In this document: positions 43,627 through 64,000 of the stretch, piece by piece
Layout of the letters: every line of letters begins with the position of its first letter
Position numbering within the stretch: the first letter of the stretch is position 1
Assembly (NCBI GenBank): GCA_964057225.1
Contig: OZ059895.1
Coordinates: forward strand, 14,074,001 to 14,138,000
DNA length: 64,000 bases
Origin: Auanema rhodensis
Lineage: Eukaryota; Animalia; Nematoda
Reading direction: 5' to 3'
The notes under the pieces: model-generated
Databases searched by the model: none
Seen by the model: only the letters and a program-made list of their open reading frames with translations
Told to the model about the DNA's origin: nothing
Program-made: the position numbers and the translations under genes

Positions 43627-43729
43627 AGACACAACACGTATTCATACCATGCGACAGCGAGGAGACACTGCTTTATTGGTTTAATTACCAAAGTTTGAAG
43701 TACTTTCCTGATTCAACCAGAAACATTCT
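43627..43729 (+). pseudogene. Degenerate, truncated SL1 RNA gene in opposite orientation at the left array border
   Basis: 43678-43699 GGTTTAATTACCAAAGTTTGAA (2 mismatches to SL1) followed by GTACTTTCCTGATTCAACCAGAAACATTCT, cut before the Sm site. Upstream remnants AGACACAACACGT and GAGGAGACACTGCTT are retained. Confidence 0.85.
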
Positions 43730-43730
43730 C

Positions 43731-46700
43731 ATCACATAGACGTGTTGTGTCTCTCCCCCCAACATGATAAAGACCGTCTCTCTTGACTAGACACCATGGG
43801 TCATACACACGTGTAGGCTACATCGAACTTGGCTCATCTCAACTACAATTCCCAGAATGATTATCATCTTCGTTGATTTTTCATTTTTAAAAATCCAAAG
43901 AACTTGATTCATCCAATGATTTTCGATTCATGTTGCTCTCCAGTGGAGAGCGTTCCAAAATTTAATTCGAACACAGAATGTTTCTGGTTGAATCAGGAAA
44001 GTACCTCAAACTTGGGTAATTAAACCGACGAAGCAGTGTCACCTCCCAGTGGCATCAATGCACATGTCGTATCACATAGACGTGTTGTGTCTCTCCCCCC
44101 AACATGATATAGACCGTCTCTCTTGACTAGACACCATGGGTCATACACACGTGTAGGCTACATCGAACTTGGCTCATCTCAACTACAATTCCCAGAATGA
44201 TTATCATCTTCGTTGATTTTTCATTTTTAAAAATCCAAAGAACTTGATTCATCCAATGATTTTCGATTCATGTTGCTCTCCAGTGGAGAGCGTTCCAAAA
44301 TTTAATTCGAACACAGAATGTTTCTGGTTGAATCAGGAAAGTACCTCAAACTTGGGTAATTAAACCGACGAAGCAGTGTCACCTCCCAGTGGCATCAATG
44401 CACATGTCGTATCACATAGACGTGTTGTGTCTCTCCCCCCAACATGATATAGACCGTCTCTCTTGACTAGACACCATGGGTCATACACACGTGTAGGCTA
44501 CATCGAACTTGGCTCATCTCAACTACAATTCCCAGAATGATTATCATCTTCGTTGATTTTTCATTTTTAAAAATCCAAAGAACTTGATTCATCCAATGAT
44601 TTTCGATTCATGTTGCTCTCCAGTGGAGAGCGTTCCAAAATTTAATTCGAACACAGAATGTTTCTGGTTGAATCAGGAAAGTACCTCAAACTTGGGTAAT
44701 TAAACCGACGAAGCAGTGTCACCTCCCAGTGGCATCAATGCACATGTCGTATCACATAGACGTGTTGTGTCTCTCCCCCCAACATGATATAGACCGTCTC
44801 TCTTGACTAGACACCATGGGTCATACACACGTGTAGGCTACATCGAACTTGGCTCATCTCAACTACAATTCCCAGAATGATTATCATCTTCGTTGATTTT
44901 TCATTTTTAAAAATCCAAAGAACTTGATTCATCCAATGATTTTCGATTCATGTTGCTCTCCAGTGGAGAGCGTTCCAAAATTTAATTCGAACACAGAATG
45001 TTTCTGGTTGAATCAGGAAAGTACCTCAAACTTGGGTAATTAAACCGACGAAGCAGTGTCACCTCCCAGTGGCATCAATGCACATGTCGTATCACATAGA
45101 CGTGTTGTGTCTCTCCCCCCAACATGATATAGACCGTCTCTCTTGACTAGACACCATGGGTCATACACACGTGTAGGCTACATCGAACTTGGCTCATCTC
45201 AACTACAATTCCCAGAATGATTATCATCTTCGTTGATTTTTCATTTTTAAAAATCCAAAGAACTTGATTCATCCAATGATTTTCGATTCATGTTGCTCTC
45301 CAGTGGAGAGCGTTCCAAAATTTAATTCGAACACAGAATGTTTCTGGTTGAATCAGGAAAGTACCTCAAACTTGGGTAATTAAACCGACGAAGCAGTGTC
45401 ACCTCCCAGTGGCATCAATGCACATGTCGTATCACATAGACGTGTTGTGTCTCTCCCCCCAACATGATATAGACCGTCTCTCTTGACTAGACACCATGGG
45501 TCATACACACGTGTAGGCTACATCGAACTTGGCTCATCTCAACTACAATTCCCAGAATGATTATCATCTTCGTTGATTTTTCATTTTTAAAAATCCAAAG
45601 AACTTGATTCATCCAATGATTTTCGATTCATGTTGCTCTCCAGTGGAGAGCGTTCCAAAATTTAATTCGAACACAGAATGTTTCTGGTTGAATCAGGAAA
45701 GTACCTCAAACTTGGGTAATTAAACCGACGAAGCAGTGTCACCTCCCAGTGGCATCAATGCACATGTCGTATCACATAGACGTGTTGTGTCTCTCCCCCC
45801 AACATGATATAGACCGTCTCTCTTGACTAGACACCATGGGTCATACACACGTGTAGGCTACATCGAACTTGGCTCATCTCAACTACAATTCCCAGAATGA
45901 TTATCATCTTCGTTGATTTTTCATTTTTAAAAATCCAAAGAACTTGATTCATCCAATGATTTTCGATTCATGTTGCTCTCCAGTGGAGAGCGTTCCAAAA
46001 TTTAATTCGAACACAGAATGTTTCTGGTTGAATCAGGAAAGTACCTCAAACTTGGGTAATTAAACCGAAGAAGCAGTGTCACCTCCCAGTGGCATCAATG
46101 CACGTGTCGTATCACATAGACGTGTTGTGTCTCTCCCCCCAACATGGTATAGACCGTCTCTCTTGACTAGACACCATGGGTCATACACACGTGTAGGCTA
46201 CATCCGAACTTGGCTCATCTCAACTATAATTCCCAGAATGATTATCATTTTCGTTGATTTTTCAATTTTAAAAATCCAAAGAACTTGATTCATCCAATGA
46301 TTTTCGATTCATGTTGCTCTCCAATGGAGAGCGTTCCAAAATTTAATTCGAACACAGAATGTTTCTGGTTGAATCAGGAAAGTACCTCAAACTTGGGTAA
46401 TTAAACCGACGATGCAGTGTCACCTCCCAGTGGCATCAATGCACGTGTCGTATCACATAGACGTGTTGTGTCTCTCCCCCCAACATGGTATAGACCGTCT
46501 CTCTTGACTAGACACCATGGGTCATACACACGTGTAGGCTACATCCGAACTTGGCTCATCTCAACTATAATTCCCAGAATGATTATCATCTTCGTTGATT
46601 TTTCAATTTTAAAATTCCAAAGAACTTGATTCATCCAATGATTTTCGATTCATGTTGCTCTCCAGTGGAGAGCGTTCCAAAATTTAATTCGAACACAGAA

Positions 46701-49700
46701 TGTTTCTGGTTGAATCAGGAAAGTACCTCAAACTTGGGTAATTAAACCGACGAAGCAGTGTCACCTCCCAGTGGCATCAATGCAAGTGTCGTATCACATA
46801 GACGTGTTGTATCTCTCCCCCCAACATGGTATAGACCGTCTCTCTTGACTAGACACCATGGGTCATACACACGTGTAGGCTACATCCGAACTTGGCTCAT
46901 CTCAACTATAATTCCCAGAATGATTATCATTTTCGTTGATTTTTCAATTTTAAAAATCCAAAGAACTTGATTCATCCAATGATTTTCGATTCATGTTGCT
47001 CTCCAGTGGAGAGCGTTCCAAAATTTAATTCGAACACAGAATGTTTCTGGTTGAATCAGGAAAGTACCTCAAACTTGGGTAATTAAACCGACGATGCAGT
47101 GTCACCTCCCAGTGGCATCAATGCAAGTGTCGTATCACATAGACGTGTTGTGTCTCTCCCCCCAACATGATAAAGACCGTCTCTCTTGACTAGACACCAT
47201 GGGTCATACACACGTGTAGGCTACATCGAACTTGGCTCATCTCAACTATAATTCCCAGAATGATTATCATCTTCGTTGATTTTTCAATTTTAAAATTCCA
47301 AAGAACTTGATTCATCCAATGATTTTCGATTCATGTTGCTCTCCAGTGGAGAGCGTTCCAAAATTTAATTCGAACACAGAATGTTTCTGGTTGAATCAGG
47401 AAAGTACCTCAAACTTGGGTAATTAAACCGACGATGTAGTGTCACCTCCCAGTGGCATCAATGCAAGTGTCGTATCACATAGACGTGTTGTATCTCTCCC
47501 CCCAACATGATAAAGACCGTCTCTCTTGACTAGACACCATGGGTCATACACACGTGTAGGCTACATCCGAACTTGGCTCATCTCAACTATAATTCCCAGA
47601 ATGATTATCATTTTCGTTGATTTTTCAATTTTAAAAATCCAAAGAACTTGATTCTTCCAATGATTTTCGATTCATGTTGCTCTCCAGTGGAGAGCGTTCC
47701 AAAATTTAATTCGAACACAGAATGTTTCTGGTTGAATCAGGAAAGTACCTCAAACTTGGGTAATTAAACCGACGATGCAGTGTCACCTCCCAGTGGCATC
47801 AATGCAAGTGTCGTATCACATAGACGTGTTGTATCTCTCCCCCCAACATGATAAAGACCGTCTCTCTTGACTAGACACCATGAGTCATACACACGTGTAG
47901 GCTACATCCGAACTTGGCTCATCTCAACTATAATTCCCAGAATGATTATCATTTTCGTTGATTTTTCAATTTTAAAAATCCAAAGAACTTGATTCATCCA
48001 ATGATTTTCGATTCATGTTGCTCTCCAATGGAGAGCGTTCCAAAATTTAATTCGAACACAGAATGTTTCTGGTTGAATCAGGAAAGTACCTCAAACTTGG
48101 GTAATTAAACCGACGATGCAGTGTCACCTCCCAGTGGCATCAATGCAAGTGTCGTATCACATAGACGTGTTGTATCTCTCCCCCCAACATGGTATAGACC
48201 GTCTCTCTTGACTAGACACCATGGGTCATACACACGTGTAGGCTACATCCGAACTTGGCTCATCTCAACTATAATTCCCAGAATGATTATCATTTTCGTT
48301 GATTTTTCAATTTTAAAAATCCAAAGAACTTGATTCATCCAATGATTTTCGATTCATGTTGCTCTCCAATGGAGAGCGTTCCAAAATTTAATTCGAACAC
48401 AGAATGTTTCTGGTTGAATCAGGAAAGTACCTCAAACTTGGGTAATTAAACCGATGAAGTAGTGTCACCTCCCAGTGGCATCAATGCACGTGTCGTATCA
48501 CATAGACGTGTTGTGTCTCTCCCCCCAACATGATAAAGACCGTCTCTCTTGACTAGACACCATGGGTCATACACACGTGTAGGCTACAACGAACTTGGCT
48601 CATCTCAACTATAATTCCCAGAATGATTATCATTTTCGTTGATTTTTCAATTTTAAAAATCCAAAGAACTTGATTCATCCAATGATTTTCGATTCATGTT
48701 GCTCTCCAATGGAGAGCGTTCCAAAATTTAATTCGAACACAGAATGTTTCTGGTTGAATCAGGAAAGTACCTCAAACTTGGGTAATTAAACCGACGATGC
48801 AGTGTCACCTCCCAGTGGCATCAATGCACGTGTCGTATCACATAGACGTGCTGTGTCTCTCCCCCCAACATGGTATAGACCGTCTCTCTTGACTAGACAC
48901 CATGGGTCATACACACGTGTAGGCTACATCCGAACTTGGCTCATCTCAACTACAATTCCCAGAATGATTATCATCCTCATTGATTTTTCAATTTTAAAAA
49001 TCCAAAGAACTTGATTCATCTAATGATTTTCGATTCATGTTGCTCTCCAGTGGAGAGCGTTCCAAAATTTAATTCGAACACAGAATGTTTCTGGTTGAAT
49101 CAGGAAAGTACCTCAAACTTGGGTAATTAAACCGACGATGTAGTGTCACCTCCCAGTGGCATCAATGCAAGTGTCGTATCACATAGACGTGTTGTATCTC
49201 TCCCCCCAACATGATAAAGACCGTCTCTCTTGACTAGACACCATGGGTCATACACACGTGTAGGCTACATCCGAACTTGGCTCATCTTAACTATAATTCC
49301 CAGAATGATTATCATTTTCGTTGATTTTTCAATTTTAAAAATCCAAAGAACTTGATTCTTCCAATGATTTTCGATTCATGTTGCTCTCCAGTGGAGAGCG
49401 TTCCAAAATTTAATTCGAACACAGAATGTTTCTGGTTGAATCAGGAAAGTACCTCAAACTTGGGTAATTAAACCGACGATGCAGTCTCACCTCCCAGTGG
49501 CATCAATGCAAGTGTCGTATCACATAGACGTGTTGTATCTCTCCCCCCAACATGGTATAGACCGTCTCTCTTGACTAGACACCATGGGTCATGCACACGT
49601 GGAGGCTACATCTGAACTTGGCTCATCTCAACTATAATTCCCAGAATGATTATCATTTTCGTTGATTTTTCAATTTTAAAAATCCAAAGAACTTGATTCT

Positions 49701-51929
49701 TCCAATGATTTTCGATTCATGTTGCTCTCCAGTGGAGAGCGTTCCAAAATTTATTTCGAACACAGAATGTTTCTGGTTGAATCAGGAAAGTACCTCAAAC
49801 TTGGGTAATTAAACCGACGATGCAGTCTCACCTCCCAGTGGCATCAATGCAAGTGTCGTATCACATAGACGTGTTGTATCTCTCCCCCCAACATGGTATA
49901 GACCGTCTCTCTTGACTAGACACCATGGGTCATGCACACGTGGAGGCTACATCTGAACTTGGCTCATCTCAACTATAATTCCCAGAATGATTATCATTTT
50001 CGTTGATTTTTCAATTTTAAAAATCCAAAGAACTTGATTCATCCAATGATTTTCGATTCATGTTGCTCTCCAATGGAGAGCGTTCCAAAATTTAATTCGA
50101 ACACAGAATGTTTCTGGTTGAATCAGGAAAGTACCTCAAACTTGGGTAATTAAACCGACGATGCAGTGTCACCTCCCAGTGGCATCAATGCAAGTGTCGT
50201 ATCACATAGACGTGTTGTATCTCTCCCCCCAACATGGTATAGACCGTCTCTCTTGACTAGACACCATGGGTCATACACACGTGTAGGCTACATCCGAACT
50301 TGGCTCATCTCAACTATAATTCCCAGAATGATTATCATTTTCGTTGATTTTTCAATTTTAAAAATACAAAGAACTTGATTCATCCAATGATTTTCGATTC
50401 ATGTTGCTCTCCAATGGAGAGCGTTCCAAAATTTAATTCGAACACAGAATGTTTCTGGTTGAATCAGGAAAGTACCTCAAACTTGGGTAATTAAACCGAC
50501 GATGCAGTGTCACCTCCCAGTGGCATCAATGCACGTGTCGTATCACATAGACGTGCTGTGTCTCTCCCCCCAACATGGTATAGACCGTCTCTCTTGACTA
50601 GACACCATGGGTCATACACACGTGTAGGCTACATCCGAACTTGGCTCATCTCAACTACAATTCCCAGAATGATTATCATCCTCATTGATTTTTCAATTTT
50701 AAAAATCCAAAGAACTTGATTCATCTAATGATTTTCGATTCATGTTGCTCTCCAGTGGAGAGCGTTCCAAAATTTAATTCGAACACAGAATGTTTCTGGT
50801 TGAATCAGGAAAGTACCTCAAACTTGGGTAATTAAACCGACGATGCAGTGTCACCTCCCAGTGGCATCAATGCACGTGTCGTATCACATAGACGTGCTGT
50901 GTCTCTCCCCCCAACATGATAAAGACCGTCTCTCTTGACTAGACACCATGGGTCATACACACGTGTAGGCTACATCCGAACTTGGCTCATCTCAACTACA
51001 ATTCCCAGAATGATTATCATCCTCATTGATTTTTCAATTTTAAAAATCCAAAGAACTTGATTCATCTAATGATTTTCGATTCATGTTGCTCTCCAGTGGA
51101 GAGCGTTCCAAAATTTAATTCGAACACAGAATGTTTCTGGTTGAATCAGGAAAGTACCTCAAACTTGGGTAATTAAACCGACGATGTAGTGTCACCTCCC
51201 AGTGGCATCAATGCAAGTGTCGTATCACATAGACGTGTTGTATCTCTCCCCCCAACATGATAAAGACCGTCTCTCTTGACTAAACACCATGGGTCATACA
51301 CACGTGTAGGCTACATCCGAACTTGGCTCATCTTAACTATAATTCCCAGAATGATTATCATTTTCGTTGATTTTTCAATTTTAAAAATCCAAAGAACTTG
51401 ATTCTTCCAATGATTTTCGATTCATGTTGCTCTCCAGTGGAGAGCGTTCCAAAATTTAATTCGAACACAGAATGTTTCTGGTTGAATCAGGAAAGTACCT
51501 CAAACTTGGGTAATTAAACCGACGATGCAGTGTCACCTCCCAGTGGCATCAATGCAAGTGTCGTATCACATAGACGTGTTGTATCTCTCCCCCCAACATG
51601 GTATAGACCGTCTCTCTTGACTAGACACCATGGGTCATACACACGTGTAGGCTACATCCGAACTTGGCTCATCTCAACTATAATTCCCAGAATGATTATC
51701 ATTTTCGTTGATTTTTCAATTTTAAAAATCCAAAGAACTTGATTCATCCAATGATTTTCGATTCATGTTGCTCTCCAGTGGAGAGCGTTCCAAAATTTAA
51801 TTCGAACACAGAACGTTTCTGGTTGAATCAGGAAAGTACCTCAAACTTGGGTAATTAAACCGACGATGCAGTGTCACCTCCCAGTGGCATCAATGCACGT
51901 TTCGTATCCCATTGGGGTGTTGTGCATCT
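43731..51929 (-). ncRNA. sls-1: Tandem array of 24 SL1 spliced-leader RNA genes, 340/341-bp unit
   Basis: Each unit contains the reverse complement of GGTTTAATTACCCAAGTTTGAG|GTACTTTCC...AAATTTTGGAAC GCTCTCC-ACT-GGAGAGC. SL 5' ends at 44026, 44366, 44706, 45046, 45386, 45726, 46066, 46407, 46748, 47089, 47429, 47770, 48111, 48452, 48792, 49133, 49474, 49815, 50156, 50497, 50838, 51179, 51520 and 51861. Confidence 0.97.
43931..44026 (-). ncRNA. sls-1: Representative SL1 snRNA gene (~96 nt)
   Basis: 22-nt SL1 exon identical to the canonical nematode SL1 (44005-44026), GT donor, Sm-binding site AATTTTGG and a terminal 7-bp hairpin. The 3' end is estimated. Confidence 0.95.
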
Positions 51930-51942
51930 TTTAGAGCGATAT

Positions 51943-54900
51943 CGTTCCATTCGGAGATCAATACGTAGCAAGCAGGTTAGAATCAGACGACATGAGGCTG
52001 AGAGAGGACGACACGCCCTTCATGTGGAACACAGCCTTTAGCTTTGCCTTATGGATTGACTATGGATGGTTGGTCTTCCTTTCTTAGCTCTCTTTTACTT
52101 TATATCTTTATGTTGACTTATATAACTTATTGTAATCATGTAGACATAATAAACCTTTCTTTCTCGAGTCTTATGTTTATCCATTATGCTCTATATCTAC
52201 CGCTACATTTGGAATACTATTACACTCATCTTGTAGGCTTTATTGGCCTATAGGATCGATGTGAGAGCATAACGGAACGTGGAGATTCCACCTCGAACGT
52301 TTCTCTTATTTTCTTAAATTTTATTCACTCTCGTAATTTTCATTTCATTTAACTTTCTCCTATCCATTGCCATCTTCTCTACGCTAAAACACAAAACGGA
52401 GGGGCCAACATCGTTATAGGGAACAGATGCAAGGAACTCTCATAATAAGAGAGAAAAATTACACATTTTGGGAAGAATTTATTTTACTTGATCCCGTTGT
52501 TCACAATTTTGTCATGTCTGAACCTAAGTCACATATCCTTGTTATTAACATCTGATTATACTGTTACCCGACCTCGAAGCCACATGAGGACTTTAGGCTG
52601 AATTCGTGAACAGATTCACCTAAAGATTTTATATATTTTGATTACCCACACCATTCTCCTCTTAAGGATTGATTTCGGCTTTGAGGAAAGAATAACTCCA
52701 GTTATTTCTTAAATTTTGTGGATGAAAAGCATGCCAATTTGAATTTTAAATAATTTTGCGATAAGGACTATTATATTTTGCGTTTAAAATCGTTCAGACA
52801 ACTTTTAGCATTTACCATCCAAAAAATATAACAAAACGCTTAAAAATCGTACGGGAAACCTCACAACAAGTGAGAGGATGTTTAATTTAATAACTTACAT
52901 TCGCTATAGTCCGAAAAATCCTGCGATATTCTCACAAACTGATCTCCCAATTTAAATTTATTCGTCAGGTCGAGTTGGCTAAAGCATATTAGTTGGATTT
53001 TCTCCCCATACTATATGTCACCTTCCTCATACCGTTTTGTTGTTTAGAAACATGAGACTCAATTCCAAATCATCTTATTCTTTTTATAATTTCGTATAGT
53101 TCTTGTAAATTTTAGTCAGCTATGTAACTTCAATATTATAAAACGAGATCTTTGGTTTGCAAAACGACTACGGTAGATTTTCTTAAAAAAGATCCTTACT
53201 TCCCGTTGAACCATGAACGAACGAATTAAGTATGCAATTGGGACTAGTAATTCCTCTTGGATAGATTGATGGATTACCAAAGGCCAATTTTAATACAACT
53301 TTTTGGAATGCCTAAGGGAGTTTGCGACTAAAAATCAGAAATTTCTATAATAAAGAGAAGGGAATAAGCCCATTGAGACTAGGCAATCATCCATAATGTG
53401 GGCGAAGAGAAAAGAAAAATGCAAATGCTATACAAATTGGACCCAAAAGACCAAGATAACCAAAGTCCAATTCCAAAGTACGGTAGAAGGCGGATCTAAA
53501 GTTATGGCCAGAACCTTAGATTCATTCCTATCCTTCCGACTTGACCAAACCAGTTGTCAGTCTCAATCTAACTTTTCCCAACTTACCACCAACAACTAAA
53601 CGTACATACCCGCCCAATTACGTTCAAATTCCATCATCCCACACGTAATCAGACACTCGAGGTTTTTTTCAAACCAAGAGCCCTAACAAGGTGGAGAGAA
53701 GGTATAACTCAGCAGTACCTCTTAGTACACACTCCAACCCGGATCCCCGTGATTCAGCTCCAGTAACTAGAAGCCAAACTCGCGCGCAAAGTGTCGCTAT
53801 CATCAACGAAGACACAGCAGAGGAGAAACCTAACATCGAAAAATTTTACACACCTCGCGCTAGTACGTTTTCTCCTTCAGAACATTTTAGCGATCCGGAC
53901 TACACACCATCCGGAGACGACGAGCGATCCTTGATCATAGACGAACAGACACCGAACACTACTACGAAAGAAAAGAAGACACAAACGCGCATTTGTTAAA
54001 GAATGTTTATTTCCTGTGGATCAAGATAGAGGAATGGAAGTTGAAGATTTTGAAACTTTTCAATCGAAGTTCAACATGTGGAGCAGCGCACAACACTCGC
54101 TCCAAAGCAAGGAACAGCGACTCAGATGACGACAGTGACATCGAAATTGTTGAATTTATACACGGAAACAATAACAAAGAATTAGACACTGAAATTGACT
54201 CACAAGACCCATCGGATCAAAACTGGATACCATCAAGAAGAAGATAAAACAACTACATTGATTACACTATTGTTAAACATTCTACATGAAATCTTTTTAA
54301 GGAAACTAGAGCTAAAAAAAAAATAATTTTACCAATACAAGCAAAAGATAGATGAGCAGTAAGCTATAACATAACGAGCAGTCAAGTTTCAAGCAAACCG
54401 AAAAAAAATTAGCTACAAAATATCATAAACGTTACTCCGATTTCAAATAATTTCCCTTAAAATCCGAAGAAATGAAAGATGAGAGACATCATATTGCAAT
54501 TTCAGCTAAGCAACAGTCATCATCAAGTAATTAATGATTCATTTCTGGAAATTATACGGGATTGTTTTAATAATTCCAAACAAATAATGTTTTCTTTCAA
54601 AGCTGAAGAAACAGCCTAGCTTTATTGAGAATATAGCTTAACTCTCGCTACTCTGCTCTATATTGGTTAGACATACAGCGCTGTGCCCAAAATAATACTT
54701 ACATGCACTTTCGCTGATAAAATATAGCTCTAGTATTCTTAAAAGATTGTGTTTTTGCTTTATACTCATGTATACTTAATTTTTATTAAATTTTTTAGAC
54801 AATATTGTTAAGGATAATATTGTATAATTTTGTATTATTTGAACAACAATAATGTATTTTAACATGTAAAACTTCTAAACCTCTTGCTACGATTGAAACA

Positions 54901-55286
54901 AGCCACACATTATTATAGTTGCGAGGACGCGACATAAACTCGAAAAAATGGCTTCCATCCGGATGATCAATACGTAGCAGGCGGGTTAGAGCTAGACGAC
55001 AAGAGACGAGAAGAGCTGACACGCCCTTTATATGGAACTCAGGCTTTAGTTCTGTCTCATGGAATGACTAAGGATGGCTTGTCATCTCCTCTAGCTCACC
55101 TATAGTTTATATCTCTTTATTTCTTATCGTAACTTATTGTAATCATTATGTAGAATAAACCTTTTTTTTCATGAGTCTTATGTTTATTCATTATGCTCTA
55201 TATCTACCGCTACATTTGGAATACTGTATCGCACATCTTATAGACTACATTGGTCTATAGGATAGATGCGAGAGCACAACGGAACG
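51943..55286 (+). mobile_element. Degenerate LTR retrotransposon inserted in the SL1 array
   Basis: Diverged direct repeats at 51943-52279 (337 bp) and 54951-55286 (336 bp), each with AATAAA and the shared block CATTATGCTCTATATCTACCGCTACATTTGGAATACT. A PBS follows LTR1 immediately. The ~2.7-kb interior has only broken ORFs (53396-54247, low complexity, TRSQTR/TRSKAR motifs). No RT or integrase was recognised, and no TSD was seen. Confidence 0.75.
52280..52292 (+). other. Primer-binding site complementary to tRNA-Gln 3' end
   Basis: TGGAGATTCCACC matches the tRNA-Gln PBS TGGAGGTTCCACC at 12/13 positions and abuts the end of LTR1. Confidence 0.7.
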
Positions 55287-56203
55287 CACTATGGGTCATA
55301 CACACGTGGAGGCTACATCGAACTTGGCTCATCTCAACTATAATTCCCAGAATGATTATCATCTTCGTTGATTTTTCAATTTTAAAAATCCAAAGAACTT
55401 GATTCATCCAATGATTTTCGATTCATATTGCTCTCCAGTGGAGAGCGTTCCAAAATTTAATTCGAACACAGAATCTTTCTGGTTGAATCAGGAAAGTACC
55501 TCAAACTTGGGTAATTAAACCGACGATGCAGTGTCACCTCCCAGTGGCATCAATGCAAGTGTCGTATCACATAGACGTGTTGTATCTCTCCCCCCAACAT
55601 GGTATAGACCGTCTCTCTTGACTAGACACCATGGGTCATACACACGTGTAGGCTACATCTAAACTTGGCTCATCTCAACTATAATTCCCAGAATGATTAT
55701 CATCTTCGTTGATTTTTCATTTTTAAAAATCCAAAGAACTTGATTCATCCAATGATTTTCGATTCATGTTGCTCTCCAGTGGAGAGCGTTCCAAAATTTA
55801 ATTCGAACACAGAATGTTTCTGGTTGAATCAGGAAAGTACCTCAAACTTGGGTAATTAAACCGAAGAAGCAGTGTCACCTCCCAGTGGCATCAATGCAAG
55901 TGTCGTATCACATAGACGTGCTGTATCTCTCCCCCCAACATGGTATAGACCGTCTCTCTTGACTTGACACCATGGGTCATACACACGTGTAGGCTACATC
56001 TGAACTTGGCTCATCTCAACTATAATTCCCAGAATGATTATCATCTTCGTTGATTTTTCATTTTTAAAAATCCAAAGAACTTGATTCATCCAATGATTTT
56101 CGATTCATGTTGCTCTCCAGTGGAGAGCGTTCCAAAATTTAATTCGAACACAGAATGTTTCTGGTTGAATCAGGAAAGTACCTCAAACTTGGGTAATTAA
56201 ACC
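55287..56203 (-). ncRNA. sls-1: Three further SL1 RNA genes (5' ends 55521, 55862, 56203)
   Basis: The same 341-bp unit resumes after the LTR element. The copy at 56203 has foreign sequence starting ~4 nt upstream of its first G. Confidence 0.96.
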
Positions 56204-56254
56204 GAACAAATATCATTAATTGTGAATCCACCAAAAGGGTTAAATTCGTTTAAA

Positions 56255-57934
56255 CTATGTGGATCTTGTCCGCTTTTTGTACCATTTGCTAACCTGAAAA
56301 TATAAGTAAAACTAAAATAATTCAATCTACAAGATACCATAATCCATATGGATAACGACCTACTCCCAGTTCGTGATGGTCAGTGTTTTGAGTTATAGTT
56401 TTCCAATCATTCAGTTGTATAGAAGCCAACAAAAACTTAAAAAACAAAAATAATATAAACGCTCAAGTTCAAATTCAAGTTTCTCACTTTAGCCAAAGCA
56501 GCATCAATAATAGTTTTGATGAACCGCCCATTAACTATTGGATCTTTCTTCCAATTTTCGGAGATACAACCTATAAAGTAAATAATACATTGGCACATAC
56601 GATAGAGTTGTATACCCAAAGTCAATAATAGTTTGCATGGTAATTACAATGTGGACTAGTTAAGCCTCGTTGAATTGATCTCTAGCTGTTTTTCCTCCAG
56701 TAAATCCATCAGAAGGTTCCATGTAAAGATCTGGAAATATATCAGCTTTTAAGTATTTTTTATGGCTCAACCTTGTAGATCATTTCCATTTTATAAATAA
56801 AACAAAGACAAATAATTTATTTATTAAATATTACAAAGATGGAAAATACCAGAATCATCATATAAATCTATCGTACATGTGTATTCCGAATTACCGTAAT
56901 TCTTCTTGTATTTTAACTCCATCATGATTATCATTGGCATCGGCGTCTGTATCTACGGAAAATCAACATTTTTTTACTTCAATCACATAACACTTACCTT
57001 TCTAATCGTTGAATATCATCTTTCTTACTTTCACATTTGTTTTGCATATTATGTTGATATCCAGTAAAAACTCATTAATCGGAGGCCCATCTATTGGAGA
57101 CTCTATCATTAACAACATTATTATTACGTATTAAATAAGCCAATTCTTTTTTAATTTTTTCAAAAACAAATATTCTTCTCACCTGCTTCTTCTTCTCTTC
57201 TAACTCTTTGATCTTCAGCCGTCTGGATATTATCAGTTAAACTCGAATCTTCTTTTATCTTTTTCGAAGAGACTTCAGGAGAATGGTGAGTTTTACTTGA
57301 TTCACTCAATGCGTCTTGGCTGAAAATATAGAATTAGTTTACTGTACTTTACTTATATCGATTTAGAATTACCGTAATTCTTCTTGTATTTTAACTCCAT
57401 CATGATTATCATCGGCATCGGCGTCTGTATCTACTGAAAAGTTTTTTCCTTTTTTAATTTTTTCAAAAACAAATATTCTTCTCACCTGCTTCTTCTTCTC
57501 TTCTAACTCTTTGATATGTTGCTCCATCAAAGCCAAAGTTAACATGTCTAAACTTCTCAAAACTGTCATAATCACTAATATCATCGCCAGGAAGTTGACA
57601 AGGAAACCCTTGATTAGAAAGCATTGCTAAAATTAATTTGTTTTTACTGCAATCACATAACACTTACTTTTAAAAATATTTTGTGCAAGATGTTTAAAGT
57701 AATCACAGACTCCCATTTTTTTATCATTAGCAACAGGATAATACTTCTGATTTAAATAATCAGCCCCTTTTTTAAATATTTTTTTAGCTTTGATTGATAT
57801 CTATAATATTTTGAAAACTAAAAAAATATTCAACAGAGATTAACCGTCTGGATATTATCAGTTAAACTCGAGTCTTCTTTTATCTTTTCCGAAGAGACTT
57901 CAGGAGAATGGTGAGTTTTACTTGAATCGCTCAT
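56255..57934 (-). CDS. Orphan multi-exon gene with internally duplicated exons; ~220-aa open frame over 6 exons to TAG at 57002-57004, then further exon-like blocks to 56255 (possibly a pseudogene)
   Basis: TTTTCAG-GCCACA-ATG, then GT-AG exons that join in phase: MSDSSKTHHSPEVSSEKIKEDSSLTDNIQT / ISIKAKKIFKKGADYLNQKYYPVANDKKMGVCDYFKHLAQNIFK / TMLSNQGFPCQLPGDDISDYDSFEKFRHVNFGFDGATYQRVRREEEA / VDTDADADDNHDGVKIQEELR / QDALSESSKTHHSPEVSSKKIKEDSSLTDNIQTAEDQRVRREEEA / ESPIDGPP...FND*. Confidence 0.6.
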
Positions 57935-58160
57935 TGTGGCCTGAAAATATAGAATTAGTTTACTCTACTTTACTTATAATCAAGCAAATCGCGAAAAATA
58001 ATTGATATAATCGTATGAAATGGGAAAACTTTTTAATTTCTTTTTAATTTAGTGAAAATTCTAATTTTATATAGTTTTCTTGAGGTTTGATGAAGAATGA
58101 AACGGATTGAGTTTGAATTCAAGCTGAAGGTATAATGATTCAATAGCGATGTGATATCTA

Positions 58161-58381
58161 CAGTCCTGTGCGATACCTACGGTCCTGTCCAGTCCTTTCC
58201 TATGGCATAGTTTCAAACAAGTAAGCTTCAGCATCTGAATTTTATCTATGAAGATAAGTTGGTTTTTCTGCATTCATTATCGTTTTTTAATATTCAAAAT
58301 ATATTTCTTTGAATTTTTGTAGTTTGTCAGAGAAGGTATAAGGGTTTCTAGTGGGTGTGCAACCCTCATCGCACAGGACTG
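58161..58381. mobile_element. Tc1/mariner-type MITE (221 bp) in the palindrome spacer
   Basis: Perfect 14-bp terminal inverted repeats CAGTCCTGTGCGAT ... ATCGCACAGGACTG, flanked by TA on both sides (58159-60 and 58382-83). Confidence 0.8.
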
Positions 58382-58996
58382 TATATGAGATATGAAACGA
58401 TAATATTATTTGTCTTACAATAAATAAACTGATATGGAATTTTAATTATTGCTTGTATAATCATTTCGCCGATAAAGAGGGCGTTTTAGATAAAGCTGAT
58501 GCTATTCAAGATAAAGGTATATAAAGGTGTAACTAAAGAATATATTAAAATAATAATAACAATAATAATATAATTATATATTATAATTATTATTATATTA
58601 ATTATAATATAATTATATGAATTTGAATGAAGAGCGGAAGTAATGTTACTGTTATCTGTTAAGCTGCTTTTTATACGAGAAAAATTGTTCTAGAATTTTC
58701 TGAACTGTTGTCTTCGTTGTAAGACTTATTAAGTACAATATTGTCTCATACCGTATCTTATACATCTTCGCATAGAAGCTCATCATTATACTTTCAGCTT
58801 GAATTCAAACCCAATCCGTTTCATTCTTTATCAAACCTCAAGAAAACTATATAAAATTAGAATTTTCACTACTTGTAGAAATTAAAAAGTTTTCCCATTT
58901 CATACGATTATATCAATTATTTTTCGCGATTTGCTTGATTATAAGTAAAGTAGAGTAAACTAATTCTATATTTGTATTATATTTGTAGTATATATT

Positions 58997-60268
58997 TGGA
59001 GCAACATATCAAAGAGTTAGAAGAGAAGAAGAAGCAGGTGAGAAGAATATTTGTTTTTGAAAAAATTAAAAAAGGAAAAAACTTTTCAGTAGATACAGAC
59101 GCCGATGCCGATGATAATCATGATGGAGTTAAAATACAAGAAGAATTACGGTAATTCTAAATCGATATAAGTAAAGTACAGTAAACTAATTCTATATTTT
59201 CAGCCAAGACGCATTGAGTGAATCAAGTAAAACTCACCATTCTCCTGAAGTCTCTTCGAAAAAGATAAAAGAAGATTCGAGTTTAACTGATAATATCCAG
59301 ACGGCTGAAGATCAAAGAGTTAGAAGAGAAGAAGAAGCAGGTGAGAAGAATATTTGTTTTTGAAAAAATTAAAAAAGAATTGGCTTATTTAATACGTAAT
59401 AATAATGTTGTTAATGATAGAGTCTCCAATAGATGGGCCTCCGATTAATGAGTTTTTACTGGATATCAACATAATATGCAAAACAAATGTGAAAGTAAGA
59501 AAGATGATATTCAACGATTAGAAAGGTAAGTGTTATGTGATTGAAGTAAAAAAATGTTGATTTTCCGTAGATACAGACGCCGATGCCAATGATAATCATG
59601 ATGGAGTTAAAATACAAGAAGAATTACGGTAATTCGGAATACACATGTACGATAGATTTATATGATGATTCTGGTATTTTCCATCTTTGTAATATTTAAT
59701 AAATAAATTATTTGTCTTTGTTTTATTTATAAAATGGAAATGATCTACAAGGTTGAGCCATAAAAAATACTTAAAAGCTGATATATTTCCAGATCTTTAC
59801 ATGGAACCTTCTGATGGATTTACTGGAGGAAAAACAGCTAGAGATCAATTCAACGAGGCTTAACTAGTCCACATTGTAATTACCATGCAAACTATTATTG
59901 ACTTTGGGTATACAACTCTATCGTATGTGCCAATGTATTATTTACTTTATAGGTTGTATCTCCGAAAATTGGAAGAAAGATCCAATAGTTAATGGGCGGT
60001 TCATCAAAACTATTATTGATGCTGCTTTGGCTAAAGTGAGAAACTTGAATTTGAACTTGAGCGTTTATATTATTTTTGTTTTTTAAGTTTTTGTTGGCTT
60101 CTATACAACTGAATGATTGGAAAACTATAACTCAAAACACTGACCATCACGAACTGGGAGTAGGTCGTTATCCATATGGATTATGGTATCTTGTAGATTG
60201 AATTATTTTAGTTTTACTTATATTTTCAGGTTAGCAAATGGTACAAAAAGCGGACAAGATCCACATAG
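58997..60268 (+). pseudogene. 5'-deleted mirror copy of the orphan gene
   Basis: Reverse complement of 56255-57526. It lacks the equivalent of 57527-57944 (acceptor, ATG, exons 1-2 and most of exon 3), which is replaced by a 23-bp filler at 58974-58996. Confidence 0.75.
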
Positions 60269-60319
60269 TTTAAACGAATTTAACCCTTTTGGTGGATTCA
60301 CAATTAATGATATTTGTTC

Positions 60320-63300
60320 GGTTTAATTACCCAAGTTTGAGGTACTTTCCTGATTCAACCAGAAACATTCTGTGTTCGAATTAAATTTTGGAACGCTCTC
60401 CACTGGAGAGCAACATGAATCGAAAATCATTGGATGAATCAAGTTCTTTGGATTTTTAAAAATGAAAAATCAACGAAGATGATAATCATTCTGGGAATTA
60501 TAGTTGAGATGAGCCAAGTTCAGATGTAGCCTACACGTGTGTATGACCCATGGTGTCAAGTCAAGAGAGACGGTCTATACCATGTTGGGGGGAGAGATAC
60601 AGCACGTCTATGTGATACGACACTTGCATTGATGCCACTGGGAGGTGACACTGCTTCGTCGGTTTAATTACCCAAGTTTGAGGTTCTTTTCTGATTCAAC
60701 CAGAAACATTCTGTGTTCGAATTAAATTTTGGAACGCTCTCCACTGGAGAGCAACATGAATCGAAAATCATTGGATGAATCAAGATCTTTGGATTTTTAA
60801 AATTGAAAAATCAACGAAGATGATAATCATTCTGGGAATTATAGTTGAGATGAGCCAAGTTCAGATGTAGCCTACACGTGTCTATGACCCATGGTGTCTA
60901 GTCAAGAGAGACAGTCTATACCATGTTGGGGGAAGAGACACAACACGTCTATGTGATACGACACGTGCATTGATGCCACTGGGAGGTGACACTGCTTCGT
61001 CGGTTTAATTACCCAAGTTTGAGGTTCTTTTCTGATTCAACCAGAAACATTCTGTGTTCGAATTAAATTTTGGAACGCTCTCCACTGGAGAGCAACATGA
61101 ATCGAAAATCATTGGATGAATCAAGATCTTTGGATTTTTAAAATTGAAAAATCAACGAAGATGATAATCATTTCGGGAATTATAGTTGAGATGAGCCAAG
61201 TTCAGATGTAGCCTACACGTGTGTATGACCCATGGTGTCTAGTCAAGAGAGACAGTCTATACCATGTTGGGGGAAGAGATACAACACGTCTATGTGATAC
61301 GACACGTGCATTGATGCCACTGGGAGGTGACACTGCTTCGTCGGTTTAATTACCCAAGTTTGAGGTTCTTTTCTGATTCAACCAGAAACATTCTGTGTTC
61401 GAATTAAATTTTGGAACGCTCTCCACTGGAGAGCAACATGAATCGAAAATCATTGGATGAATCAAGATCTTTGGATTTTTAAAATTGAAAAATCAACGAA
61501 GATGATAATCATTTCGGGAATTATAGTTGAGATGAGCCAAGTTCAGATGTAGCCTACACGTGTGTATGACCCATGGTGTCTAGTCAAGAGAGACAGTCTA
61601 TACCATGTTGGGGGAAGAGACACAACACGTCTATGTGATACGACACGTGCATTGATGCCACTGGGAGGTGACACTGCATCGTCGGTTTAATTACCCAAGT
61701 TTGAGGTACTTTCCTGATTCAACCAGAAAGATTCTGTGTTCGAATTAAATTTTGGAACGCTCTCCACTGGAGAGCAACATGAATCGAAAATCATTGGATG
61801 AATCAAGTTCTTTGGATTTTTAAAAATGAAAAATCAACGAAGATGATAATCATTCTGGGAATTATAGTTGAGATGAGCCAAGTTCAGATGTAGCCTACAC
61901 GTGTCTATGACCCATGGTGTCTAGTCAAGAGAGACAGTCTATACCATGTTGGGGGAAGAGACACAACACGTCTATGTGATACGACACGTGCATTGATGCC
62001 ACTGGGAGGTGACACTGCTTCGTCGGTTTAATTACCCAAGTTTGAGGTACTTTCCTGATTCAACCAGAAACATTCTGTGTTCGAATTAAATTTTGGAACG
62101 CTCTCCACTGGAGAGCAATATGAATCGAAAATCATTGGATGAATCAAGTTCTTTGGATTTTTAAAATTGAAAAATCAATGAGGATGATAATCATTCTGGG
62201 AATTATAGTTGAGATGAGCCAAGTTCAGATGTAGCCTACACGTGTCTATGACCCATGGTGTCTAGTCAAGAGAGACAGTCTATACCATGTTGGGGGAAGA
62301 GACACAACACGTCTATGTGATACGACACGTGCATTGATGCCACTGGGAGGTGACACTGCTTCGTCGGTTTAATTACCCAAGTTTGAGGTACTTTCCTGAT
62401 TCAACCAGAAACATTCTGTGTTCGAATTAAATTTTGGAACGCTCTCCACTGGAGAGCAATATGAATCGAAAATCATTAGATGAATCAAGTTCTTTGAATT
62501 TTTAAAAATGAAAAATCAACGAAGATGATAATCATTTCGGGAATTATAGTTGAGATGAGCCAAGTTTAGATGTAGCCTACACGTGTGTATGACCCATGGT
62601 GTCTAGTCAAGAGAGACAGTCTATACCATGTTGGGGGAAGAGATACAACACGTCTATGTGATACGACACGTGCATTGATGCCACTGGGAGGTGACACTAC
62701 TTCATCGGTTTAATAACCCAAGTTTGAGGTACTTTCCTGATTCAACCAGAAACATTCTGTGTTCGAATTAAATTTTGGAACGCTCTCCACTGGAGAGCAA
62801 CATGAATCGAAAATCATTGGATGAATCAAGATCTTTGGATTTTTAAAATTGAAAAATCAACGAAGATGATAATCATTCTGGGAATTGTAGTTGAAATGAG
62901 CCAGGTTCGATGTAGCCTACACGTGTGTATGACCCATGGTATCTACTCAAGAGAGACGGTCTTTATCATGTTGGGGAGAGAGATACAACACGTCTATGTG
63001 ATACGACACGTGCATTGATGCCACTGGGAGGTGACACTGCTTCGTCGGTTTAATTACCCAAGTTTGAGGTACTTTCCTGATTCAACCAGAAACATTCTGT
63101 GTTCGAATTAAATTTTGGAACGCTCTCCACTGGAGAGCAACATGAATCAAAAATCATTGGATGAATCAAGTTCTTTGGATTTTTAAAATTGAAAAATCAA
63201 CGAAGATGATAATCATTTCGGGAATTATAGTTGAGATGAGCCAAGTTCAGATGTAGCCTCCACGTGTGTATGACCCATGGTGTCAAGTCAAGAGAGACAG

Positions 63301-64000
63301 TCTATACCATGTTGGGGGGAGAGATACAACACGTCTATGTGATACGACACGTGCATTGATGCCACTGGGAGGTGACACTGCATCGTCGGTTTAATTACCC
63401 AAGTTTGAGGTACTTTCCTGATTCAACCAGAAAGATTCTGTGTTCGAATTAAATTTTGGAACGCTCTCCACTGGAGAGCAACATGAATCAAAAATCATTG
63501 GATGAATCAAGTTCTTTGGATTTTTAAAATTGAAAAATCAACGAAGATGATAATCATTTTGGGAATTGTAGTTGAGATGAGCCAAGTTCGATGTAGCCTA
63601 CACGTGTGTATGACCCATGGTGTCTAGTCAAGAGAGACGGTCTTTATCATGTTGGGGGGAGAGATACAGCACGTCTATGTGATACGACACGTGCATTGAT
63701 GCCACTGGGAGGTGACACTGCTTCGTCGGTTTAATTACCCAAGTTTGAGGTACTTTCCTGATTCAACCAGAAAGATTCTGTGTTCGAATTAAATTTTGGA
63801 ACGCTCTCCACTGGAGAGCAACATGAATCAAAAATCATTGGATGAATCAAGTTCTTTGGATTTTTAAAATTGAAAAATCAACGAAGATGATAATCATTTC
63901 GGGAATTATAGTTGAGATGAGCCAAGTTCAGATGTAGCCTCCACGTGTGTATGACCCATGGTGTCAAGTCAAGAGAGACAGTCTATACCATGTTGGGGGG
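60320..64000 (+). ncRNA. sls-1: Tandem array of at least 11 SL1 RNA genes, continuing past the window end
   Basis: SL1 starts at 60320, 60661, 61002, 61343, 61684, 62025, 62366, 62707 (variant T9A), 63047, 63388 and 63728, each followed by a GT donor, Sm site and hairpin. Confidence 0.97.

Follow-up and report, generated by a model that had tools for sequence, protein, structure and literature searches.

Tandem gene arrays can have truncated edge repeats and captured gene fragments at their borders, at segmental-duplication junctions that arise through microhomology-mediated end joining or template switching. Fold-back inverted duplications are known from yeast and human, and arm-identical palindromes from primate sex chromosomes. 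Retrotransposons that target SL genes include NeSL-1 in Caenorhabditis elegans and SLACS, CZAR, and CRE in the trypanosomatids. Template switching onto small nuclear RNAs can yield chimeric retro-copies, of which the U6-L1 chimeras of mammals are an example.

In the window analyzed here, the whole of a 64,000-nt stretch of the Auanema rhodensis genome, the innermost gene of a tandem SL1 array is preceded by foreign DNA and its normal spacer is gone (60319/60320 on the + strand, mirrored at 56204/56203). As in the captured fragments of tandem-array edge repeats, the foreign DNA is intron-bearing, dead, doubly truncated, joined through a 2-nt microhomology, and accompanied by further inserts; it differs from them in that the break lies within 2 nt of the transcription start and appears to have been copied subsequently into a palindrome. 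The palindrome resembles fold-back palindromes in its 1.66-kb identical arms, its non-palindromic spacer with short inverted repeats, and its AT-rich self-complementary sequence, but its arms lead into two tandem SL1 arrays and one arm carries an additional 395 nt. The arrays themselves are like the 5S-free tandem SL1 arrays of nematodes, with 341-bp units that each contain a complete SL1 gene and a conserved upstream box, except that two edge copies, and only these, are without the upstream part.

With NeSL-1, SLACS, CZAR, and CRE the locus shares the interruption of an SL array by foreign DNA near the 5' end of the leader; unlike those elements, it has no target-site duplication and the inserted DNA consists of intron-bearing cellular gene fragments. 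An SL-targeting retrotransposon was rejected, as no reverse-transcriptase/endonuclease ORF or Pfam domain of that kind is present between the two junctions. Simple insertion into an SL1 gene was also rejected, because SL1 begins at +1 on each flank and the two flanks are oppositely oriented, facing outward; so was a DNA transposon bounded by long terminal inverted repeats, since its flanks would share one orientation. The junction and the SL1 genes and arrays on either side of it are placed as follows.

60318 to 60319, + strand: TC dinucleotide at the junction (mirror at 56204-56205; BLAST blocks end at 60318 and 56205)
60320 to 60414, + strand: innermost SL1 RNA gene of the right array, with the exact 22-nt leader and a match to Rfam RF00198
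56109 to 56203, - strand: innermost SL1 RNA gene of the left array, 100% complementary to 60320-60414 (22-mer at 56182-56203)
60318 to 64000 and on past the window, + strand: 341-bp SL1 array, 79 copies in total (TRF and copy runs)
43731 to 56205, - strand: 341-bp SL1 array, 27 copies, with inserted DNA at 51924-55286

One exact copy of the SL1 22-mer begins at 60320 on the + strand and another at 56203 on the - strand. Both of these innermost copies are preceded by ...AATGATATTTGTTC, and normal units by ...GACACTGCTTCGTC or near variants. Across the 264 kb that we compared (C3:14.074-14.338 Mb), the aberrant upstream 14-mer is found in 2 of 122 SL1 copies, the innermost pair only, in agreement with the first-pass annotation, which had reported a non-standard sequence upstream of them. 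We placed the breakpoint by aligning the window with five paralogues of the foreign DNA on C5 and with one normal SL1 unit. The homology to the paralogues ends exactly at 60319, and the last two nucleotides, TC, are common to the paralogues (...TTTGTTC|TGTACAAT) and to the SL1 spacer (...CTTCGTC|GGTTTAAT). Because TC is shared by both sides, the breakpoint lies between -2 and +1 of SL1; this alignment with donor-type paralogues moves it to 0-2 nt from the SL start, from the ~3-4 nt upstream first proposed. A random break in the 341-nt unit would fall within 2 nt of SL1 +1 with a chance of about 1-2%.

The foreign DNA on the far side of the junction is made up of two parts, the second of which ends in an exon that runs into SL1.

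58997 to 59775, + strand: mosaic of short exon-like blocks, related to C5 by blastn (mirror at 56748-57526, - strand)
59776 to 60319, + strand: GH25-like lysozyme gene fragment (pseudogene), with 90% identity to a paralogue (mirror at 56204-56747, - strand)
60231 to 60326, + strand: last lysozyme exon in the family frame (LANGTKSGQDPHSLNEFNPFGGFTINDICSV), with its TAA stop at 60324-60326

The mosaic matches the minus strand of L011:6437-8951 at 71-90% (blastn). This relative is a C5 gene of repeated RNase H1 N-terminal (hybrid-binding) domains, of which an ORF matches Pfam Cauli_VI (PF01693, E 3e-13); the ORFs of the window mosaic have no Pfam match. The mosaic and the lysozyme fragment lie on the same strand in the window, and the two genes are convergent on C5. 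Between the junctions (56204-60319) no ORF exceeds 71 aa, and no domain of transposon type was found.

The lysozyme fragment comprises the last four exon-equivalents, with introns kept, and is 90% identical over 565 nt to L011:5168-5725 on C5. Its homology starts in an intron, the 5' exons are missing, and ~20 C-terminal codons are lost at the junction. Relative to the paralogue it has suffered deletions of 10 nt (~59855), 1 nt (~59965), and 2 nt (~60112), a premature stop (TGA for TGG at 59899-59901), and an alteration of the intron acceptor CAG near 60080. It contains no intact GH25 ORF, and the catalytic region is missing. To judge from the three frameshifting deletions, the premature stop, and the lack of 5' exons, the captured piece is dead.

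The first-pass annotation had taken this fragment for an orphan gene ending in the block VSKWYKKRTRST*, whose stop lies 51 nt short of the junction, with no AATAAA in between. Both the stop and the absence of AATAAA or a common variant (59760 to 60319) are found in the sequence, but the frame that starts at 60230 and contains the stop is not that of the family. In the family frame, which stays open across the junction, the exon reads LANGTKSGQDPHSLNEFNPFGGFTINDICS; nucleotides 5-7 of SL1 supply the TAA. Last-exon paralogues in the 60231 frame give 33 genomic matches, all but the two window copies on C5; apart from the window pair and a truncated copy on C5, none of them has an internal stop. 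Two diverged C5 paralogues compared in this frame by BLASTP share 40% identity (E 4e-16), and the phase-2 intron TTATG|GTAT...AG|G is kept in three diverged paralogues. The 31 residues of the window exon match a C5 paralogue at 97% identity; alignment with the family extends no further than ...NDICSV, and the conserved QY...C.I.CN.DF tail is absent. The proposed gene end is accordingly in the wrong frame, as judged by the 33 paralogous exons, the phase-2 intron, and the alignment, and the gene is no orphan: it has at least 33 lysozyme paralogues on C5 and is truncated by the junction.

The family was assigned by a profile of eight last exons, which matches the C-termini of proteins named as lysozymes by their sources, from Panagrolaimus, Anaeramoeba, and Caenorhabditis (E 4e-5 to 8e-4); Pfam GH25 scores 27 bits (P0007, at the cut-off) and 17.5 bits (P0015) on the profile matches. 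Protein searches were run exon by exon, on exons of 35-70 aa. At this scale Pfam PF01183 did not match the window or paralogue exons singly, nor the genome in six frames, a PDB sequence search with one lysozyme exon returned no match, and the ESM Atlas gave weak leads only (at 0.85), including GH25 and Rv2525c-like clusters. A paralogue with a single long exon was sought, and every inspected copy has short exons. The ORF that crosses the junction found no candidate in a word-indexed protein collection, a blank of little weight given the length window of that search. On the profile and paralogue matches, we assign the window gene to the GH25-like lysozyme family as a pseudogene fragment.

On the other side of the junction, the SL1 gene at 60320-60414 is preserved, with the exact leader and GT donor (GGTTTAATTACCCAAGTTTGAG|GT at 60320-60343 and at the mirror), the Sm site AATTTTGG, and a 3' stem-loop; its native upstream sequence is missing. 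RF00198 matches this copy over model positions 1-103 (54 bits, E 1.8e-8; gathering score 75), taking in AAUUUUGG and the 3' hairpin. A score below gathering is common to every unit of the array, and at the gathering threshold Rfam has no match in the whole window, SL1 being visible only under an E-value threshold. Against the array consensus, the innermost unit shows only four differences, all at common polymorphic sites; such an undecayed unit fits a recent event or array homogenization, and equally continued use.

Normal SL1 genes have an upstream element composed of an ATACG box (-46 to -42) and a CTGGGAGGT-like box (~-27 to -15). Both boxes are found in 11 promoter-bearing copies of three kinds (341-bp units, 252-bp units, and dispersed copies), a conservation that suggests that they constitute the promoter. 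The SL1 genes at 60320 and 56203 have neither box and are the only two among the 122 copies in the 264 kb to lack them. The earlier claim that the innermost copies lack an snRNA promoter therefore stands as a loss of conserved upstream boxes, with conservation identifying these as the probable promoter. The two copies would be promoterless because the lysozyme fragment joins at the first base of SL1.

The junction and its mirror image lie within a larger inverted repeat.

55320 to 57526, - strand: left arm, 2.6 SL1 units plus 1,323 nt of unique sequence (2,207-nt inverted repeat, 99%)
58997 to 61203, + strand: right arm, partner of 55320-57526
57527 to 58996, no strand: asymmetric center, with shorter inverted blocks and a non-palindromic core

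The inner parts of the arms (55866-57526 and 58997-60657) are 100% complementary over 1,661 nt, and each of the 19 mismatches between the arms lies beyond the first SL1 unit. The center contains inverted blocks at 57945-58041/58877-58973 and 58050-58139/58782-58871, and is asymmetric, with 418 nt on the left (57527-57944) versus 23 nt on the right; its 642-nt core (58140-58781) is non-palindromic and includes an AT-rich self-complementary stretch (~58540-58620). Near-identical inverted arms around a non-palindromic spacer mark this as a probable fold-back palindrome with spacer. The outer limits of the arms are masked because they pass into tandem SL1 arrays that homogenize. The junction had been reported on both arms; it is indeed present twice, but as a single event copied, not as two observations, since copying of the junction region in inverted orientation would account for both the second junction and the two outward-pointing arrays. 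Because the closest paralogue is just 92-94% identical over the query stretch, the capture would predate the duplication of the arms, or the arms have been kept alike by conversion.

The right-side SL1 sequence runs in register through ~245 nt of untranscribed spacer into the 79 tandem units. Within the 264 kb, the 341-bp arrays have non-transposon breakpoints at unit phases 0, +6, +51, +136, +294, and +296, the one at +6 being a second junction in the same array, with the microhomology ATT. These arrays also contain further fragments of foreign genes, as well as another head-to-head junction, which shows that the locus rearranges often. At locus L008 the breakpoints are at +192/+195 and -106; the 252-bp array begins at ~-78, and its units carry TTTT directly before SL1. 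A genome-wide pattern search found one other exact SL1 22-mer with a base other than T at -2; it is a retro-copy-like SL1-plus-mRNA sequence (C4:11749558), not an array edge, and as a single, unlike case gives no sign of recurrent exact +1 junctions.

We consider the junction to be probably an ordinary rearrangement scar, rather than a designed transcription unit or a new route to leader RNA. A genomic piece of the lysozyme / RNase H1-binding-domain cluster of C5 would have been joined to the 341-bp SL1 array of C3 by way of the 2-nt TC microhomology, which happens to sit at the first SL1 base; the join would have removed the spacer and promoter of the SL1 copy as well as the ~20 lysozyme codons. 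Later inverted copying of the junction, the first SL1 unit, and ~1.3 kb of the captured DNA, most likely by fold-back or template-switch repair, would have produced the palindrome with its spacer. Most likely, little or nothing is transcribed from the two promoterless SL1 copies, and their contribution would be negligible beside that of the at least 1,258 exact SL1 genes in the genome.

Several other readings account for parts of this structure. An assembler mis-join in a highly repetitive region could have created the inverted duplication or the junction, as near-identical tandem repeats are where long-read assemblers err and the inner arms are perfectly identical; we think this quite unlikely, as a fold-back chimeric read would give a spacerless perfect palindrome, whereas here the center is asymmetric around its core, past the first unit the arms differ as much as units normally do from one another, and the junction is deep within a 24-Mb contig. 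Read-through from the upstream coding unit into the promoterless SL1 gene would yield chimeric RNAs with an internal leader, donor, and Sm site, which could serve as donors of an extended leader or undergo snRNA-type 3' end formation. The intact SL1 part and the lack of a polyadenylation signal from 59760 to the junction are consistent with this, and if the 1990 work of Hannon et al. applies here, some SL-type processing might reportedly be independent of an upstream promoter. It is nevertheless very unlikely: the upstream unit is a mosaic pseudogene that lacks both an intact reading frame and a demonstrated promoter, the stop codon on which the proposal relied is in the wrong frame, the junction ORF is unmatched in the word-indexed collection (a weak blank), two copies add little to the SL1 genes of the genome, and a rearrangement scar accounts for the whole structure. 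More improbable still is retroposition, by insertion of an SL1 cDNA that began at the cap site or by a template switch of reverse transcriptase at the 5' end of SL RNA. A junction at +1 is the expected end of a full-length cDNA, as in U6-L1-type chimeras, where the junction is likewise at the exact end of the small-RNA sequence, and the genome holds at least one retro-copy-like sequence, that on C4. Unlike in those chimeras, however, both partners here are genomic, with introns on one side and untranscribed spacer on the other: the lysozyme fragment aligns to its genomic paralogues including their introns, and the SL1 side continues unbroken through the spacer into the array. Neither poly(A), a target-site duplication, nor a reverse-transcriptase ORF was seen, and the capture of an SL cDNA suggested by the first-pass annotation is therefore largely refuted.

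It is also possible, though we regard it as unlikely, that the position of the break reflects transcription. Busy SL1 genes might break preferentially at the promoter or start, through transcription-replication conflict or in an open, factor-bound promoter, and a junction at +1 would then be a typical product of recurrent array splitting, inversion, and capture of foreign DNA. That SL1 +1 lies within 2 nt of one breakpoint, with a second at +6, may hint at this. Four of six breakpoints lie between the ATACG box and +6, about 16% of the unit, and the microhomologies at the two junctions are as expected of end joining or template switching. However, this grouping is post hoc and the sample small, the L008 breakpoints and the start of the 252-bp array dilute the pattern, and the genome-wide search gave no sign that exact +1 junctions recur; the case rests on a single event. 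It is correspondingly doubtful that the SL1 segment from the ATACG box at ~-46 to ~+6 is a preferred site of breakage.

The observation is real but ordinary, and its biological weight is small: two of more than 1,250 SL1 genes would be promoterless after a rearrangement that left a dead lysozyme fragment beside them. The annotation is corrected in that the "orphan" is a lysozyme pseudogene and the palindrome accounts for the opposed arrays; the case also cautions that choosing the wrong phase for exon-like blocks can create a spurious stop and a spurious 3' UTR. The locus is a well-defined and dated case of SL1 array splitting and inversion, in which an old capture would be followed by a palindrome that is very recent or maintained by conversion. 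If breakpoints do cluster at the promoter and start, the locus would argue for fragility linked to transcription in arrays of small-RNA genes; highly active SL1 genes would then drive the fission, inversion, and foreign-fragment capture of their own arrays, and the junction would not be a chance scar.

The window (C3:14,074,001-14,138,000) belongs to a 181-Mb, nematode-type genome; its SL1 spliced-leader RNA genes are arranged in tandem units of 341 bp, each holding one complete gene (exact 22-nt leader, GT donor, Sm site AATTTTGG and terminal hairpin). Rfam RF00198 matches these units over its full length, but at 50-54 bits (E about 1e-8) they do not reach its gathering score of 75. The two arrays flank a palindrome, and breaks in them are given as unit phases, +1 being the first leader base:

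43731-51924 and 55287-56205, minus strand: SL1 array, interrupted by inserted DNA
51924-55286: inserted DNA; the halves of the minus-strand array end here at unit phases -62 and -107
55320-57526 and 58997-61203: palindrome arms, between the minus- and plus-strand arrays
58997-59775: mosaic upstream of a lysozyme fragment, related to a gene of RNase H1 N-terminal-domain repeats on contig C5
60318 to past the window end, plus strand: SL1 array, 79 copies

Along the array, the SL1 intron start takes two forms in alternating blocks, GAG/GTACTTTCC and GAG/GTTCTTTTC (60342-60352 versus 60683-60693 and later units), and the copy at 62707 has an altered leader (GGTTTAATAACCC).

Both innermost SL1 copies, at the plus-strand junction 60319/60320 and its minus-strand mirror 56204/56203, carry ...AATGATATTTGTTC upstream in place of ...GACACTGCTTCGTC, as the first-pass annotation had observed. 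Only this pair has the aberrant sequence among 122 SL1 copies in 264 kb (14.074-14.338 Mb of C3, the window's contig), and the junction occurs exactly twice in the whole genome. Although present on each arm, it is a single event, the arms being 100% complementary over mirror positions 58997-60657 and 57526-55866; these 1,661 nt comprise 1,323 nt of unique DNA and the entire first SL1 unit. All 19 arm mismatches fall beyond that unit, in SL1 units two and three, and are as frequent as differences between units usually are. The palindrome centre (57527-58996) is imperfect, with 418 nt on the left against 23 nt on the right, and its 642-nt core is not self-complementary, which argues against a simple fold-back-read artefact.

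We aligned positions -110 to +25 of 341-bp units, 252-bp units (from an array at C3:6.74 Mb), six dispersed copies, the edge copy at 43678 and the junction copy. An ATACG box (-46 to -42) and a CTGGGAGGT-like box (about -27 to -15) are common to all aligned SL1 copies except the junction copy, which has neither. If these boxes are the promoter, as their conservation would suggest, the two innermost copies lack it, in agreement with the earlier proposal. The 252-bp units form a second, much larger array (L037:1501 onward in the fetched stretch, C3:6,741,531 onward in the assembly); they differ from the 341-bp units in the SL RNA intron part and have the same ATACG..CACGTGC upstream box, of which array the first copy is preceded by about 78 nt of its own upstream sequence.

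The DNA abutting the arrays had been described as an orphan gene; it belongs to a lysozyme family. Positions 59776-60319 are 90-94% identical to several copies on C5 near 6.84-6.86 Mb, and a six-frame genome search with the last exon gave 33 matches, all on C5 except the two window copies. The last exons of two diverged paralogues are 40% identical (E 4e-16). A profile of eight last exons, searched against 1.84 billion proteins, matched the C-terminal ends of 195-285-aa proteins, among them Panagrolaimus and Anaeramoeba proteins labelled lysozyme by their sources, as well as Caenorhabditis proteins. With Pfam GH25, one profile match scored at the cut-off (27 bits) and another 17.5 bits; Pfam found none among single lysozyme exons or in a six-frame genome search, the exons being individually too short. 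By these sequence matches, we assign the fragment to a GH25-like lysozyme gene of the amoeba/nematode type.

In the last exon, the family frame begins at 60231, reads LANGTKSGQDPHSLNEFNPFGGFTINDICSV, and is entered via a phase-2 intron (TTATG/GTAT...AG/G) kept in three diverged paralogues. In the paralogues it extends 20 more codons, with a conserved QY...C.I.CN.DF tail; in the window copy it enters the SL1 gene and ends at a TAA from SL1 nt 5-7. The stretch VSKWYKKRTRST, previously read as a last exon whose stop lies 51 nt before the junction, is in a neighbouring frame. Because the family frame is open through the junction, there is no stop with a 51-nt 3' UTR, and the junction truncates the coding sequence itself; the reported absence of AATAAA before the junction is real and is simply expected inside coding sequence. 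The 5' exons are missing, since paralogue homology starts only at 59776, inside an intron; the fragment, which still contains introns, carries further lesions relative to the paralogue:

near 59855: deletion of 10 nt
59899-59901: TGA instead of TGG
near 59965: deletion of 1 nt
near 60080: altered acceptor
near 60112: deletion of 2 nt

The fragment is dead. The repeat gene related to the upstream mosaic (Pfam PF01693 in the C5 copy, E 3e-13) is convergent with the lysozyme gene on C5, whereas the two are on the same strand in the window. On C5 (fetched stretches L011:6437-8951, minus strand, and L012; C5:6.84-6.86 Mb) it is built from tandem repeats of 585 bp, every one of which codes for an RNase H1 N-terminal (hybrid-binding) domain; the block of repeat gene and convergent lysozyme paralogue is duplicated whole, at 5.3- and 5.9-kb periods, and is interspersed with short, 240-nt copies of the lysozyme 3' end.

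Homology to the paralogues ends exactly at 60319 (...TTTGTTC/TGTACAATATTCCC... in the paralogues versus ...TTTGTTC/GGTTTAATTACC in the window). Since the SL1 spacer has TC at its end too, the breakpoint lies inside a 2-nt TC microhomology, 0-2 nt upstream of SL1 +1, slightly off the 3-4 nt given before. The first SL1 unit next to the junction is not distinguishable from the array consensus. Capture of an SL cDNA, suggested earlier, is not supported: one side has kept its introns, and the other leads, without loss of register, through untranscribed spacer into further SL1 units. Nor is an SL-targeting retroelement supported, since RT and EN ORFs are lacking and the flanks face opposite ways. 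Between the junctions, no ORF is longer than 71 aa or contains a transposon-type domain. The simplest reading is that a break in the SL1 array would have captured C5 genomic DNA, joined via microhomology, and that inverted duplication would have followed. Divergence from the nearest paralogue is 6-8% and between the palindrome arms 0%, suggesting that the capture long predates the palindrome or that conversion keeps the arms uniform.

A break at +1 has a chance of about 1-2%. Non-transposon breakpoints in the 264 kb fall at phases 0, +6, +51, +136, +294 and +296, four of the six between the ATACG box and +6, a grouping that is suggestive but post hoc; further breakpoints lie at +192/+195 and -106 (fetched stretch L008) and at about -78 (start of the 252-bp array). 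Among exact SL1 22-mers genome-wide, one other has a non-T at -2 and it is not at an array edge, so there is no sign of recurrent junctions at exactly +1. Downstream of this 22-mer (L039:1231-1524, minus strand; contig C4:11749288-11749581) come a 24-nt leader, an 81-aa ATG ORF and a 336-aa coiled-coil gag-like ORF, not the SL RNA intron; the whole resembles the retro-copy of a retroelement mRNA trans-spliced to SL1.

Other rearrangements were seen in the arrays. At 43649-43731 part of a plus-strand SL1 unit (about -29 to +51), diverged in sequence, is joined head-to-head to the minus-strand array, which is broken at 43731 within its GATACG box; the far end of this array therefore bears a second inverted junction, a small one. 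A 3.1-kb foreign insert in the plus-strand SL1 array (L019:3006-6100; C3:14,161,006-14,164,100) contains serpentine-receptor-like and carboxylesterase-like ORF fragments; the array ends at +136 and restarts within the leader, at +6, where there is a microhomology of ATT. The breakpoints at 43731 and L019:8776 (C3:14,166,776) are independent and have phases +296 and +294; separated by 2-3 nt, they lie just inside the conserved ATACG box or at its 5' edge.

The first-pass observation was largely right; the interpretation erred on the gene, the frame and the cDNA idea. As to the proposed read-through from the upstream gene, no protein was retrieved by a word search with the junction ORF, a weak blank. 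In Ascaris, internal elements reportedly serve initiation and 3' end formation, by the title of a 1990 report from Hannon et al.; by analogy, promoterless SL1 copies may retain residual transcription or processing. The feature is an ordinary rearrangement scar within a young palindrome, real in the assembly, and, since at least 1,258 exact SL1 genes exist in the genome, two promoterless copies at the array edges, preceded by a dead mosaic gene, are unlikely to matter.
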